IMG/VR virus record: IMGVR_UViG_3300023257_000007
Span: 62,001 to 126,000 of that record
Strand: one strand, 5' to 3'
Length of the DNA stretch: 64,000 nt
The notes under the pieces were generated by a model. The model saw only the letters and a list, made by a program, of their open reading frames with translations, was not told the origin of the DNA and made no database searches. Within the stretch, counting starts at the first letter, position 1, and the number at the start of each line of letters is the position of its first letter. Position numbers and translations under genes: made by a program. This document shows positions 2,807 to 62,153 of this stretch, piece by piece.

Positions 2807-3468
2807 TAAATCATCTTATCTATATTTTCTATTCTAATTTTACCTTTACCAACTAAACTTTCACAACTTCTACTAAAATCTGCTAAAAAATCATTATTTT
2901 CTTTAACAAATAATTTATAATCTATTTGTTTATCTTCATTAATATACTCAGTTGAAGGTAAATAATTAACATTCCAACCTTCATCTAATTTAGTAATAAG
3001 TATTTTACTTTCTGATACAAAAAAGTTTTTAATATCTTTTTCAGACAAATATTCTAAAAAATAATCTTCTGGAATATTTTTCAAATCATTAAGTTGAATA
3101 GTTGATTCTTTAATAACATAGTCTTCATAACTAAATACCTCTTTAGGTTCAGGAATCATATTAAGAGAATCTAATTCATCATATAAAGTATTAACCATAT
3201 TATTTAAAACAGGTAAACTATACATATGAATAGATGAATGTATAGTTGATTCTAATAAAAGATCACTAGTATTTTTAGTATGTTCTTTAATATAATTTTC
3301 AATTTTATCAATCAATTCTTCTTTACCTTTTAAAGTTAAATTTGAAGGTTCATTATCATATTGAATAACAATTTTTTCTTCTATTAATCTACCAATAGTT
3401 TTTCTTAATTGAGAAGGATATTTCTTAGTATATTCTTCTTTTTTATCGTAATTACTAAATTTTTTCAT
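2806..3468 (-). CDS. Hypothetical protein (MKKFSNY N-terminus)
   Basis: 220-aa ORF in a tight operon. Confidence 0.7.
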   Translation of the reverse strand: MKKFSNYDKKEEYTKKYPSQLRKTIGRLIEEKIVIQYDNEPSNLTLKGKEELIDKIENYIKEHTKNTSDLLLESTIHSSIHMYSLPVLNNMVNTLYDELDSLNMIPEPKEVFSYEDYVIKESTIQLNDLKNIPEDYFLEYLSEKDIKNFFVSESKILITKLDEGWNVNYLPSTEYINEDKQIDYKLFVKENNDFLADFSRSCESLVGKGKIRIENIDKMI

Positions 3469-7178: not shown

Positions 7179-7909
7179 GTATTTATATTATCAAGAAGTT
7201 CCTTTAAATATTTTTTCTTATTCGATTTATATTCTTCTTCAATTATTCTAATTAATTTAATATTATTATCTAGACAATATTCATCTAACAATTTATCTAG
7301 ATGAACAACCTTTTCATATTTTTCTGGTGTGCCTAATTTTTCATATAATTCTTTTGATCTATGCCAAATACCATCATATTCAATAAATAATTTCCTGTCA
7401 GAAAAAGTTATATCAACAGATTTACTATCAATTTTATTAAATGTTATTATCCTATGTGATTTAACATTATGTTCACCATATATTTTTTTGAGATACTTTC
7501 TTATTTCACGTTCACCCTTCGAAGAACATCTACTATTATTTGGTCCTCTTAAATTTTGAATACATTTTTCTCTATATTCTAAATCATTATTTAATTTATA
7601 AATAATTGATTTACTTATTTTATCTTTAGTTTCTTTACTATGTTCTCTCGTATTTGCACATGATCGACTACAAAAATATTTTTCTTTAATTGGAAATTTT
7701 TTAGATGGTTCTTTTACATTAAATTTAACACCACAATTATTACATATTACTTCATAATCAGTTACAACTCCTTGCTCATTTATCATTCTTTTGTGTCTGG
7801 CTTTAATAAGATTATCCTTTGAAGGTTTTTTATGTTTCCATCTTATGTGATTGGCTTTAATTTTAGCATTATCAAATTCTTCATCACAATATTCACAAGT
7901 ATATTTCAT
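7175..7909 (-). CDS. Free-standing putative homing endonuclease: C2H2-like and CxxC zinc fingers plus Vsr/DUF559-like PD-(D/E)xK domain
   Basis: CEYC..HIRWKH, CNNCG..YFCSRSC, SSKGEREI, VDITF..LFIEYDGIWH, IKLIRI; own TATATA at 7929-7934. Confidence 0.8.
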   Translation of the reverse strand: MKYTCEYCDEEFDNAKIKANHIRWKHKKPSKDNLIKARHKRMINEQGVVTDYEVICNNCGVKFNVKEPSKKFPIKEKYFCSRSCANTREHSKETKDKISKSIIYKLNNDLEYREKCIQNLRGPNNSRCSSKGEREIRKYLKKIYGEHNVKSHRIITFNKIDSKSVDITFSDRKLFIEYDGIWHRSKELYEKLGTPEKYEKVVHLDKLLDEYCLDNNIKLIRIIEEEYKSNKKKYLKELLDNINT

Positions 7910-7980: not shown

Positions 7981-8007
7981 AAAAAAGCCACATAATGTGG
8001 CTTTTTT
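7981..8007 (-). terminator. Intrinsic terminator immediately after tmRNA
   Basis: aaaaaagccacat/atgtggctttttt inverted repeat, a few nt from the tmRNA 3' end. Confidence 0.8.
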
Positions 8008-8028
8008 TAGTGGAGCATTCGGGATTCG

Positions 8029-8245
8029 CTTTTTTATCCAAAAATTTCTTAATGGCGTGGACTATATCATCAACCTAATTAGGTTGCCGGGCGCTCTAGG
8101 ATGTATGTCATCTAGTCTCTGAACCTTCCATTTCTAAATTAATAGCTTGGCTGCTGATTGCCGTATCTTTTTTTAAAAGACTTAGGGTTCCAGCAATTCA
8201 CCCAGTTTTTTCATTATATGTTACCATATAAGGGGTCCGAATTTA
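8029..8245 (-). mobile_element. Group I intron (217 nt, no ORF; P7.1 hairpin suggests subgroup IA) inserted in the tmRNA T-loop
   Basis: P AATTGCTGGAA (8188-8198), Q AATCAGCAG (8151-8159), R GTTCAGAGACTA (8113-8124), S GATATAGTCC (8059-8068); P1 GGGUU|..GACCC with U:G at the 5' splice site; P10 AUUCG/CGAAU; P3 CUGGGUG/CGCCCGG; terminal G at 8029. Confidence 0.93.
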
Positions 8246-8404
8246 AACCCGAGTTCACAACAAGTTCCAGTTCGCTTTCTACAGATATATTTTATTTTTT
8301 CACAAACAAACAAAATATTCAATCTTTTTTATTTCAGGAAAATTGAAAAATCCCTATTCTATTTTATTTAAATACGATTAGACGTGTCGTACTTGTTGAT
8401 TTGT

Positions 8405-8491
8405 CTAGGCAACCACTTCCAGAGCAGATTCAACAACTGCTTCTTGTGAAGTTACAATATCAAAGATATCATCGGCTATTTCTATATTGCC
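8405..8491 (-). other. tmRNA tag reading frame (A)GNIEIADDIFDIVTSQEAVVESALEVVA*
   Basis: Resume codon GGC after TTAAAT; 28 codons to TAG; hydrophobic/Ala C-terminus. Confidence 0.8.
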
Positions 8492-8594
8492 ATTTAAAAT
8501 TGTTTATCTCCGTATTTTACTTGAACTGAGATTTGACAAGATCTGCTTACTAACCTTCATCGAGAGTGTCTAAAGCCTGTATGCCCCATATTTT

Positions 8595-11188: not shown

Positions 11189-11270
11189 TCATTTAATATC
11201 CTTCTAGGGACATCCTTCGCTTAGTTCCCGTTCAAGACCTTAAATAGGTAGATGATTGGAGGAAGGTGGG

Positions 11271-11471
11271 TTACTGAATGTTCGAGTCATTCGTGTCTAA
11301 TCTTTTCATTAAATCCTTAATTAATTTTTCAATTATTTTAATAGAATTTTGTAAATAAATACATTCAACACATCTTTTCGACATACCATGACTGGTCATG
11401 AGATCTGTTCTAATACTTTCTAAAAGTTTTTTACTATTATTTAATTTACTAATTATTTCAGTTTTTTCCAT
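11271..11471 (-). CDS. Small hypothetical protein
   Basis: 66-aa ORF with A-rich upstream region. Confidence 0.5.
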   Translation of the reverse strand: MEKTEIISKLNNSKKLLESIRTDLMTSHGMSKRCVECIYLQNSIKIIEKLIKDLMKRLDTNDSNIQ

Positions 11472-15461: not shown

Positions 15462-15971
15462 ATGAAAAACAGAGAAATCGAAAGAAAATGGTTAATAAAT
15501 AAAAAAGATTTACCAGAACTAACAAAAATGCCTTATATTAATATAACACAAGGTTATATGAAAAGTGATGGTGAGCTTACAATAAGATTGAGACAATCTC
15601 TTTATATGAGATATTCAAATGATTTAATTGGTGAAGAATATACAATGACAATAAAAGGCGCTGGACTAAAAGATAGAGAAGAAAGAGAATCTGTTATTTG
15701 GAAGCCTCAATTTTCTACATTTTGGCCACTATGTCGAGAATACACAATACACAAACATAGATATGAATATACTGGCGTAAATAATAATATAATACAAATA
15801 GACATATTTAAAAATGAATTTAAAGATCTTTATATGTTAGAAATAGAATTCAACACATTAAAAGAATGTGATGAATATGTATCAGAAGATTGGTTTGGTA
15901 AAGAAGTAACAGAAGACTTCAAATATTCAAACTTTTATATGGCAGTAAACAAAAAACCTATTTTAATATAA
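15462..15971 (+). CDS. CYTH / triphosphate tunnel metalloenzyme
   Basis: EIERKWL, RLRQ, TIKG, K.RY, ID.F, LEIEF, WFGKEVT.D.KYSN. Confidence 0.88.
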   Translation: MKNREIERKWLINKKDLPELTKMPYINITQGYMKSDGELTIRLRQSLYMRYSNDLIGEEYTMTIKGAGLKDREERESVIWKPQFSTFWPLCREYTIHKHRYEYTGVNNNIIQIDIFKNEFKDLYMLEIEFNTLKECDEYVSEDWFGKEVTEDFKYSNFYMAVNKKPILI

Positions 15972-17053: not shown

Positions 17054-17054
17054 G

Positions 17055-17126
17055 TGGAGCCTACGGGAATCGAACCCGTGTCTTCTGAGTGCAAGTCAGA
17101 AATAATAGCCTCTATACGAAGGTCCC
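17055..17126 (-). tRNA. trnA: tRNA-Ala(TGC)
   Basis: GGGACCT/AGGCTCC acceptor with G3:U70 (one A:C mismatch); anticodon arm TCTGA-CTTGCAC-TCAGA; GGTTCGATTCC. Confidence 0.92.
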
Positions 17127-17133
17127 ATTTTTG

Positions 17134-17207
17134 TACTCCCGATTGGACTCGAACCAACAACTTCTGCCATGTAACGGCAGCACTCTACGCAATTGAGCTA
17201 CAGGAGC
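17134..17207 (-). tRNA. trnV: tRNA-Val(TAC)
   Basis: GCTCCTG/CGGGAGT; CTGCC-GTTACAT-GGCAG; GGTTCGAGTCC. Confidence 0.92.
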
Positions 17208-17212
17208 GTTTG

Positions 17213-17286
17213 TAGTCTCGATGAGATTCGAACTCATGACCTCTTGCACGTCAAGCAAACACTCTAACCAACTGAGCTACGAAACT
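17213..17286 (-). tRNA. trnV: tRNA-Val(GAC)
   Basis: AGTTTCG/CGAGACT; TAGCTCAGTTGGTTAGAGT D-arm; TTGC-TTGACGT-GCAA; GAGTTCGAATCTC. Confidence 0.93.
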
Positions 17287-17290
17287 ATAG

Positions 17291-17361
17291 TACTCTCGAA
17301 GGGACTCGAACCCCCACTAAGGGTTTAGAAGACCCTTGTGCATCCATTACACCACGAAAGC
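17291..17361 (-). tRNA. trnR: tRNA-Arg(TCT)
   Basis: GCTTTCG/CGAGAGT; AGGGT-CTTCTAA-ACCCT; GGGTTCGAGTCCC. Confidence 0.92.
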
Positions 17362-17362
17362 A

Positions 17363-18055
17363 TTAACACATTTTCAATTTTTTAATTATATCACTAATAG
17401 TGCCTTTTGAAGCACAAAAATATTCAGCAATTTTAACTTGTTTAATATTTTGATTAAAATACATATCATAAACTTTTTCTCTATCAATTTTTGGTTGTTT
17501 ATATTTCAAATTATTAGATTTTTCTATAATTTCATCAAGATTTTCGTAGAAAAATTTTGAATCTGTATGTTTTATTGTGTGACAATTTCTACATATTATT
17601 TTACATTTATCTAATTCATTTTGTACTTTTTCACTCAAATCTTTTATACTATCAAATCTACTAGTTATATCACTTAAAATAAAATCCTTATTTCTTTCAT
17701 GATGAAAATTTAATGACGAATTACATTTATTATATCCACATATATAACATTTATCATCACCTAAATATTTTAAATAAATGTGTTTGTTGTGTCTCTTATT
17801 AGAAACTTTGCCAATTTTTTCATGTAATTCTTGATGACAATTTTGACAATATAATTCACACTTTTTTAACTCTTTCTCTATTATATTCCAGCTATAATTT
17901 CTTAAAACATTTAATGATTCTTTTTTATCATCTATATGATGAAAACACAATTTTAATATATTATCTTCACCACACATTTTACAAGAACCACCAAGTAATT
18001 TAACTGCTTTGTACTTTTTAGCAAAAACTAATATTTTTGTTGATAATTTTTTCAT
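17363..18055 (-). CDS. Double-HNH homing endonuclease-like protein with C-terminal HTH, inserted in the tRNA cluster
   Basis: Two CxxC..L.FHH..C...CxNCH..H units plus QVKIAEYF..SKGTISDII; real start is the ATG at 18055 (the track's 18100 start runs through a palindrome). Confidence 0.85.
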   Translation of the reverse strand: MKKLSTKILVFAKKYKAVKLLGGSCKMCGEDNILKLCFHHIDDKKESLNVLRNYSWNIIEKELKKCELYCQNCHQELHEKIGKVSNKRHNKHIYLKYLGDDKCYICGYNKCNSSLNFHHERNKDFILSDITSRFDSIKDLSEKVQNELDKCKIICRNCHTIKHTDSKFFYENLDEIIEKSNNLKYKQPKIDREKVYDMYFNQNIKQVKIAEYFCASKGTISDIIKKLKMC

Positions 18056-18104
18056 GTTCGAGGTTTTAATTTTATATATTAAAATTAAAACCTCGAACAT
18101 GAAA
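18050..18104 (-). promoter_or_regulatory. Perfect 25-bp hairpin with late promoter TATATA at the apex; stem includes the HNH start codon
   Basis: tttcatgttcgaggttttaatttta / taaaattaaaacctcgaacatgaaa, 5-nt loop tatat. Confidence 0.85.
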
Positions 18105-18108
18105 TTTG

Positions 18109-18182
18109 AGCGAATGAACGGATTCGAACCGTCACCTCAACTTTGGAAGAGTTATATGCTAACCATTAAACACCACATTCGC
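18109..18182 (-). tRNA. trnG: tRNA-Gly(TCC)
   Basis: GCGAATG/CATTCGC, U discriminator; TAACT-CTTCCAA-AGTTG; CGGTTCGAATCCG. Confidence 0.94.
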
Positions 18183-18192
18183 TTATTTCTTG

Positions 18193-18265
18193 ATCCCCCT
18201 GTCGGAATCGAGCCGACTTCCCCGATTTACAAGACCGGACATAATCCATTAAATGCTTAGGAGGA
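18193..18265 (-). tRNA. trnT: tRNA-Thr(TGT)
   Basis: TCCTCCT/AGGGGGA; CCGGT-CTTGTAA-ATCGG; T-loop CTCGATT (C at position 54). Confidence 0.88.
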
Positions 18266-18273
18266 ATATATAG

Positions 18274-18353
18274 AACCCCAAGTGGGACTCGAACCCACAT
18301 TTTCAATTCCAATTACCGATAACTGTTTCGAAGACAGAACGGATTACTGAGGT
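18274..18353 (-). tRNA. Atypical tRNA-like gene with Arg(TCG) anticodon; no canonical D-arm, expanded variable region
   Basis: ACCTCAG/TTGGGGT acceptor; CTGT-CTTCGAA-ACAG anticodon arm; GTGGG-TTCGAGT-CCCAC T-arm; only about 8 nt between acceptor and anticodon stems. Confidence 0.7.
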
Positions 18354-18362
18354 ATTTATTTG

Positions 18363-18436
18363 TATAAGCGGTGAGAGTCGAACTCACAATAATCCTCAGT
18401 CCAAGTGAGGCAACCACGCCAATGGATCGCGCCTAT
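18363..18436 (-). tRNA. trnP: tRNA-Pro(TGG)
   Basis: ATAGGCG/CGCTTAT; CCTCA-CTTGGAC-TGAGG; GTGAG-TTCGACT-CTCAC. Confidence 0.88.
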
Positions 18437-18467
18437 ATTATTACAAAAAATCAAAGAACTTACTCCA

Positions 18468-18513
18468 GAAAACAAAAAACCTCAACCAATGGTTTGAAAC
18501 ACTGGTCGAGGTT
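18468..18513 (-). terminator. Intrinsic terminator (candidate attenuator) between leader ORF and first tRNA
   Basis: AACCTCGACCA/TGGTTGAGGTT 11-bp stem (one G:U) followed by TTTTGTTTT on the minus strand, about 30 nt before tRNA-Pro. Confidence 0.8.
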
Positions 18514-18538
18514 GTGGTTTGATATATGGAGGATTAAA

Positions 18539-18646
18539 TTACAAATCCTCAAACTCTAACAGTGTAGGTATAACGGTGCCGGCCACGGGTCTCGTCGGAG
18601 TCCCTGTGCGTACTACTACTGCCATTATGTTAAAGTTTAAATTCAT
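18539..18646 (-). CDS. Candidate leader peptide MNLNFNIMAVVVRTGTPTRPVAGTVIPTLLEFEDL (35 aa; not in ORF track)
   Basis: ATG with A-rich upstream, TATATA at 18672-18677; GC-rich core codons; stop 25 nt before the terminator stem. Confidence 0.7.
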   Translation of the reverse strand: MNLNFNIMAVVVRTGTPTRPVAGTVIPTLLEFEDL

Positions 18647-18744
18647 TTTTATATCAATTTTTTCGTATTATTATATATTGACCGTAAAAAGTCAAATTTT
18701 TCTATTTTTATATTTATCACAAAAGTAGTTAAAAGTTTTTAAAA

Positions 18745-61901: not shown

Positions 61902-62153
61902 ATGGCAAAAGTAATTGAAATGACAGGCAGCCCTAAATCAGCGGGTTTTAAAACAAAATCTACTTTTTTAGAAAAATTAGCAGAATTTGGATTTACACAA
62001 TCTAAAATGAAAAAGAAAGATAACCCAGTAGATATATTAGTAACAAATGATCCTGGATCTACAACATCTAAAATGACACTTGCCAATGAATTAGGTGTTG
62101 AAATTATGACTTATGAAGATCTTAAAGATTCATTCAATTTAGAGGTAGATTAA
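61902..62153 (+). CDS. Stand-alone BRCT domain (LigA-type)
   Basis: MTG..KTK..F...L...G..VDILVTND..STTSKM.LA.ELGVEIMTY. Confidence 0.8.
   Translation: MAKVIEMTGSPKSAGFKTKSTFLEKLAEFGFTQSKMKKKDNPVDILVTNDPGSTTSKMTLANELGVEIMTYEDLKDSFNLEVD

Follow-up and report, generated by a model that had tools for sequence, protein, structure and literature searches.

A 35-codon ORF in front of the tRNA genes of a giant phage is built largely from codons for the amino acids of those tRNAs, and it sits before an intrinsic transcription terminator. The same design was found in nine other phages and contigs, mostly phages of Bacteroidota. On this sequence evidence, the element is most likely a ribosome-mediated, leader-peptide transcription attenuator that lets the phage make tRNAs only when decoding of those codons is slow. 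The mechanism is of a known kind, but its target, tRNA genes, appears to be new; no description of leader peptides controlling tRNA genes, in phages or elsewhere, was found in the literature searched, although that literature was incomplete and prior work cannot be excluded.

Leader, terminator and tRNA array

The stretch of DNA analyzed, referred to as the window, consists of 64,000 nucleotides (positions 62,001 to 126,000) of the IMG/VR record IMGVR_UViG_3300023257_000007. The features of the locus, all on the minus strand, are given in Table 1. As stated in the original prediction, residues 9-25 of the leader are only Ala, Val, Arg, Thr, Gly and Pro, all six occur, and 19 of 20 residues are in this set over residues 9-28, Ile26 being the exception. 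The synonymous codons listed there are also correct: all four Thr codons, CCG/CCC/CCT, GTA/GTG/GTT, GCA/GCC, GGG/GGC and CGC/AGA. Two corrections are necessary. First, the terminator stem is 14 bp rather than 11. Second, ARAGORN calls seven tRNAs, not eight. The additional "Arg" is only a sub-threshold tRNA-like element, with an Rfam score of 26.7 bits against a cut-off of 29; only its acceptor and T arms fold canonically, and calling it Arg-TCG rests on reading one loop by eye.

Table 1. Features of the leader and tRNA locus in the window
Feature	Position	Strand	Description and basis
TAnnTTTG box	18727-18720	-	TACTTTTG; motif search
Promoter-like site	18667..18695	-	TTGACT, 17 nt, AATAAT; 10 of 12 consensus matches; overlaps the originally noted TATATA
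Leader ORF	18539..18646	-	35 codons plus TAA (18541-18539), ATG start; second in-frame ATG at 18625; also called by JGI's gene caller
Hairpin 1 (regions 1:2)	18548..18640	-	Outer AU-rich stem (18640-18628 with 18560-18548) encloses the GC-rich run; fold -25.5 kcal/mol
Regulatory run, codons 9-25	18572..18622	-	Continues Ile-Pro-Thr to 18563
Region 2, 5' half of antiterminator	18551..18565	-	Codons 28-32; pairs with terminator 5' arm at 18513-18499
Hairpin 2	18529..18550	-	GAGGAUU/AAUCCUC, stop codon in the loop; GAGGAUUU resembles the purine box of the other leaders
Intrinsic terminator (regions 3:4)	18468..18513	-	14-bp stem (18513-18478), 8-nt loop, T-run to 18468; 31 nt before tRNA-Pro; hairpin -20.9 kcal/mol
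tRNA array	17054..18436	-	Pro-TGG, tRNA-like element (18353-18274), Thr-TGT, Gly-TCC, [HNH ORF], Arg-TCT, Val-GAC, Val-TAC, Ala-TGC; ARAGORN, Rfam
HNH homing-endonuclease ORF	17363..18104	-	Inserted in the array; PHROGs phrog_2255, E = 1.6e-28; 22-bp perfect palindrome at 18104-18050, which gave spurious miRNA hits in Rfam

The run is not an artefact of GC content or of the hairpin. A run of 17 or more in-set residues in any frame occurred in 0 of 20,000 mononucleotide shuffles, at a rate of 7e-4 in dinucleotide shuffles of the GC core, and in 0 to 1 of 50,000 shuffles that preserve the predicted base pairs (P at most 2e-5). The frame therefore carries a real three-base periodicity on top of the structure. 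The island is the most GC-rich 60 nt of the window (0.62 against 0.256 overall). Other GC islands in the window lie inside genes. GC3 in the run is 0.53 against 0.13 in long ORFs, and nine of its codons occur at 3.1 per 1000 or less in the phage's genes. By standard wobble, 11 of 17 run codons (12 of 19 in-set codons to position 28) are read by the array's tRNAs. The remaining 7 of the 19 in-set codons need U34 to read U or C, with the exception of CGC, which is read by none of the seven called tRNAs. The N-terminal residues N-L-N-F-N-I-M and Ile26 also have no tRNA in the array.

The scan found no promoter-like site between the terminator and tRNA-Pro. TAnnTTTG is not enriched upstream of ORFs in the window, so the box is evidence neither for the host nor for this promoter. 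The leader has no SD-like motif, but only 5 of 67 long ORFs in the window have one; few SD motifs and Lak-like relatives point to Bacteroidota as hosts.

No variant copy of this leader was found in any collection searched. The window is part of two IMG/VR contigs of 348 and 345 kb, and all other contigs carrying the locus are 100% identical. Searches with the exact core in IMG/VR, with a tRNA-Pro pattern, and with the upstream 276-aa gene in IMG/VR and in a 5.8-billion-protein set returned only identical copies. The M42 peptidase neighbor and the 52-54% relatives of the 276-aa gene led to relatives at 52-65% protein identity, which have no tRNA array at this position. A phmmer search with the 35-aa peptide against 1.84 billion cluster representatives gave only itself plus low-complexity hits, and a third-position-degenerate codon pattern in JGI metagenomes gave only the two source contigs plus GC-rich noise.

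Alternative folds and the proposed mechanism

The leader region folds better than shuffles (z = -3.5). The antiterminator that could not be resolved in the original prediction is present: ACACUGUUAGAG (18565-18554) in the 3' arm of hairpin 1, together with the UUGAGG noted there, is complementary to the terminator 5' arm (18510-18499). Duplex energies for the 1:2, 2:3 and 3:4 pairings are -11.4, -12.4 and -22.3 kcal/mol. The 2:3 pairing has P about 0.01 against shuffles, and in cis the gain is a modest -6.3 kcal/mol (P = 0.016); a looser scan of the whole upstream region gave P = 0.17. For the window alone the evidence for the antiterminator is thus moderate. When only the RNA 3' of a ribosome was folded, with the transcript ending before the terminator's 3' arm, the antiterminator formed for A-site codons 1-24 and disappeared from codon 25 on, codon 25 being the last of the run. 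The picture is less clear if pairing across a stalled ribosome is allowed, since the outer stem of hairpin 1 then re-forms for codons 12-26; it is inferred that a second, initiating ribosome would cover that arm.

These features suggest the following mechanism, in which translation of the leader, the direction of regulation and the physiological trigger are inferred. Transcription would start upstream of the leader, and a ribosome translates it while RNA polymerase approaches the terminator. If the ribosome is slowed anywhere in codons 9-24, region 2 is free and pairs with the terminator's 5' arm as that arm emerges, the terminator cannot form, and polymerase reads into the tRNA genes. If decoding is fast, the ribosome runs on to the stop codon and covers region 2. 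If there is no translation, hairpin 1 holds region 2 instead. In both cases the terminator forms. The sampled codons belong to the families served by the tRNAs downstream, so the operon's own products would speed up leader translation and switch the operon off, a negative feedback that supplies tRNAs on demand. The trigger could be a host tRNA pool poorly matched to the phage, host shut-off, or a tRNA-cleaving defense; the anticodon-nuclease defense raised in the original prediction is only one possible use.

Leaders before other tRNA arrays

The original prediction that the leader's amino-acid set should track tRNA content in other phages was tested on analogous loci and came out strongly positive. 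The only BLAST hit of the region was the tRNA-Pro of Cellulophaga phage phi19:1. Upstream of that tRNA lies a 30-codon ORF followed by a terminator; its center reads H-I-Q-R-L-P-Q-P and the array is Pro, Gln, His, Leu, Arg. Phage phi10:1 shares the promoter but has a different ORF and a different array, with the run W-S-Y-S-C-F-S-Y-S-F before Tyr, Trp, Phe, Ser, Cys. In Maribacter phage Panino the run Q-R-L-H-Q-E-L-E-Q-P precedes Pro, Glu, Gln, His, Leu, Leu, Arg, and a second leader rich in A/G/I/K precedes Ala, Lys, Ile, Gly. However, some arrays have no recognizable leader (Panino Asp-Thr-Val and Met). Cellulophaga phages phi38:1 and Calle_1 have three leaders before three arrays, each matched. 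Tenacibaculum phage Gundel_1 has two leaders, and an HNH gene lies between its leader and array. A Tenacibaculum pT24 hit was promoter similarity only, and the pattern GGGRRGGATTTCTRTGKTGTA had no IMG/VR hit.

A scan of IMG/VR with the shared promoter-start pattern gave 56 loci. The short ORFs that are followed by tRNAs, among them those on three contigs (L030, L032 and L064), have runs made of their array's amino acids, while the longer ORFs have no tRNAs downstream. In addition, a 635-kb uncultured megaphage (LR745206) has a 38-codon leader with 21 consecutive residues from M/T/N/L/V/I before Asn, Arg, Leu, Val, Ile, Thr, Met tRNAs, and its box pairs with the terminator at -15.6 kcal/mol. 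The Met-Asn-Leu-Asn stretch (ATG-AAT-TTA-AA) that opens the window's leader occurs at codons 4-7 of this one. The analogous ORFs in the other phages are 20-38 codons long.

Permuting arrays among 14 leaders never reached the observed match (0 of 200,000), and 13 of 14 leaders contain every amino acid of their array. The match also holds at codon level: arrays with Arg-ACG have CGN in the run, and those with Arg-TCT have AGA. A terminator was found in 12 of 13 leaders, starting 22-31 nt after the stop (49 in one). In those 12, and in LR745206, a box complementary to its 5' arm lies just after the run. Nine of 13 have P below 0.05 and Fisher's combined P is 3e-13, although the leaders are not independent. 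As controls, 16 arrays in Aeromonas phage Aeh1, Erwinia phage ChrisDB and Lactococcus phage phiL47 were examined. These also have tRNA genes interspersed with small ORFs and homing endonucleases, but none has a matched leader ORF; the best upstream ORF scored at most 6 of 10, against 7-10 in the Bacteroidota-phage arrays (Mann-Whitney P = 4e-5).

The same promoter-start pattern in bacterial genomes picks up Flavobacterium and Chitinophagales leaders with a Trp-Trp-Trp run and a terminator upstream of trpE, trpG and trpD, for example in Flavobacterium undicola (L131:3317-3367). The cultured-phage tRNA leaders thus use the host's attenuator design: a TAnnTTTG promoter a few nt before the ATG, a Met-Lys-Thr start, a codon run, then a terminator. 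The window's leader shares the logic and anatomy but has a different start, no adjacent TAnnTTTG and a much longer, GC-rich run.

It is somewhat more likely than not that the element belongs to an unrecognized, widespread class of tRNA-supply sensors in phages of Bacteroidota, from 50-kb podoviruses to 635-kb megaphages. In such a class each tRNA array would be an autonomous module whose leader peptide measures decoding speed for the codon families that the array serves, and the phage could switch its tRNAs on only in hosts or conditions where those tRNAs are limiting, including after tRNA cleavage by host defenses or after phage-induced host shut-off.

Other explanations and related systems

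A stand-alone structured small RNA, or a processing leader of the tRNA precursor in which the ORF is incidental, is unlikely. The region folds well, has promoter-like and terminator-like ends, and structured RNAs form GC islands in AT-rich genomes. But shuffles that keep the structure almost never give the codon pattern, and no Rfam 15 family, including the proteobacterial leader families, matches 18437-18700 at E up to 10 or at gathering score. A non-coding RNA would also not explain why ten or more unrelated-looking leaders each spell the amino acids of their own array in frame after an ATG.

Equally doubtful is a translated small ORF with some other role, either encoding a small protein or merely protecting the untranslated tRNA transcript from Rho or nucleases without codon-specific sensing. 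The ORFs are annotated as hypothetical proteins in several records, and a translated leader could shield the transcript. However, the peptide sequences are not conserved, only their composition relative to the array, and this reading explains neither the antiterminator and terminator pair nor the match to each array.

An RNA-level sensor, in which the codon run pairs directly with the anticodons of free tRNAs like a multi-specifier T-box, would also show the codon-level match for Arg, but it is improbable. There is no T-box match at E up to 10, the leaders have an ATG, an open frame and a stop placed shortly before the terminator, the start of the cultured-phage leaders is the same as in host trp leader peptides, and the runs of 10-21 contiguous triplets are unlike any known tRNA-binding RNA. 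Coincidence of a GC-rich hairpin with GC-rich-codon amino acids, conceivable because the first-two-base set GC, CG, GG, CC, AC, GT is closed under reverse complement and a hairpin can propagate it, is very unlikely given the shuffle tests and the independent recurrences with AT-rich sets such as W/S/Y/C/F and N/L/M/T/I/V.

Leader-peptide attenuators of amino-acid operons (E. coli/Salmonella trp, his, leu, thr, ilvGMEDA, pheA) likewise have a short ORF with a cluster of regulatory codons and alternative 1:2, 2:3 and 3:4 pairings, with an intrinsic terminator as 3:4; ilvGMEDA and thr are probably also multivalent. Here the regulated genes are tRNA genes rather than biosynthetic enzymes, six amino acids are sampled (up to nine in phi38:1), the element is in a phage, and the signal would report decoding capacity, with the operon's own products feeding back on it directly. 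The pheST operon of E. coli, with its Phe-rich pheM leader peptide and terminator, may be the nearest case of attenuation controlling tRNA-related genes, but it controls a synthetase, senses one amino acid and is chromosomal. T-box riboswitches sense tRNA status and switch between a terminator and an antiterminator upstream of translation-related genes, but they bind one uncharged tRNA directly and are not translated.

tRNA genes are generally thought to be controlled at promoters, and apparently no tRNA operon is known to be governed by a leader peptide. A sensor that reads out the decoding capacity the operon supplies would be a new regulatory logic for tRNA genes; it would explain why phage tRNAs are grouped in recurrent sets and would make host tRNA supply, as seen by the phage, directly measurable. 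Elsewhere in the window, a tmRNA at 8590-8005 was not supported by Rfam or ARAGORN. The leaders also correct annotation: several are deposited as "hypothetical proteins" with wrong starts, and at least one annotated ORF overlaps tRNA genes.

Features within and beyond the tRNA array

The tRNA array is split by an HNH homing-endonuclease gene (PHROGs E = 1.6e-28), which is preceded by a perfect 22-bp palindrome. The leader still samples the Val, Ala and Arg-AGA codons served by the tRNAs beyond this gene, so the insertion looks secondary. In the phage Gundel_1 an HNH gene is found between the leader and the array. The array also includes a tRNA-like element with a canonical acceptor stem and T arm, but with a single long central hairpin in place of the D and anticodon arms. 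It scored 26.7 bits in Rfam and was not called by ARAGORN even at relaxed thresholds. Similar uncalled tRNA-sized gaps occur in the Panino and phi38:1 arrays.

A GC-richer intergenic stretch of the window starts with GGGGCAT and ends with ATGCTCCA before a terminator, an arrangement that could make an acceptor stem with G3:U70, like a tmRNA, although neither ARAGORN nor Rfam supports that assignment. A small GC island with a T-arm-like GAATGTTCGAGTCATTC may be another unrecognized tRNA-like element.

Positions of the additional features in the window and in the compared sequences
Feature	Sequence	Position	Strand
HNH homing-endonuclease gene with preceding palindrome	window	17363-18104	-
tRNA-like element	window	18274-18353	-
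GC-richer intergenic stretch	window	8005-8590	-
Small GC island	window	11199-11297	+
Stretch similar to the leader's promoter, 5' UTR and start	window	15784-15824 (against 18636-18676)	+
Megaphage leader	LR745206.1 (L137)	7415-7531 (against window 18646-18625)
Flavobacterium and Chitinophagales trp leader peptides	L131 (also L101, L111, L128)	3317-3440 (in L131)

Start regions of the leaders

The first codons of the window leader (Met-Asn-Leu-Asn...) resemble part of the leader of the megaphage LR745206.1, where Asn, Leu, Met and Ile are served by the array. In the window these residues have no tRNA, and thus they may be a relic or may point to arrays elsewhere in the 348-kb genome. A 41-nt stretch that is 78% similar to the leader's promoter, 5' UTR and start (…AAAAATGAATTTAAA) lies inside an ORF on the other strand. 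This may be chance in AT-rich DNA, or a shared promoter and start module.

The Flavobacterium and Chitinophagales trp leader peptides have a Met-Lys-Thr start and a Trp-Trp-Trp run, with a terminator before trpE/G/D. The ATG follows the TAnnTTTG promoter box by only about 4 nt, so these leaders may be nearly leaderless mRNAs.

Recurrent tRNA sets and deposited annotations

The same three tRNA sets recur in different phage families, each with its own leader: Pro/Glu/Gln/His/Leu/Arg, Ala/Lys/Ile/Gly/Met/Asp/Thr/Val/Arg, and Tyr/Ser/Asn/Trp/Phe/Cys. These sets were seen in the loci L017, L018, L020 (Panino), L021 (phi38:1) and L022 and in the IMG/VR contigs L030, L032 and L064. In addition, a 79-kb contig binned as a bacterial MAG (Lacinutrix, CAKZMU010000050.1; loci L115 and L130) carries two leader-plus-tRNA-array modules of the phage type, and it is probably a phage or prophage contig.

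The deposited annotations of phi38:1 (gp066, gp070 and gp071) and Panino (CDS0063) call the leaders hypothetical proteins with upstream TTG or ATG starts. The annotated phi38:1 gp071 overlaps tRNA-Pro and tRNA-Glu.
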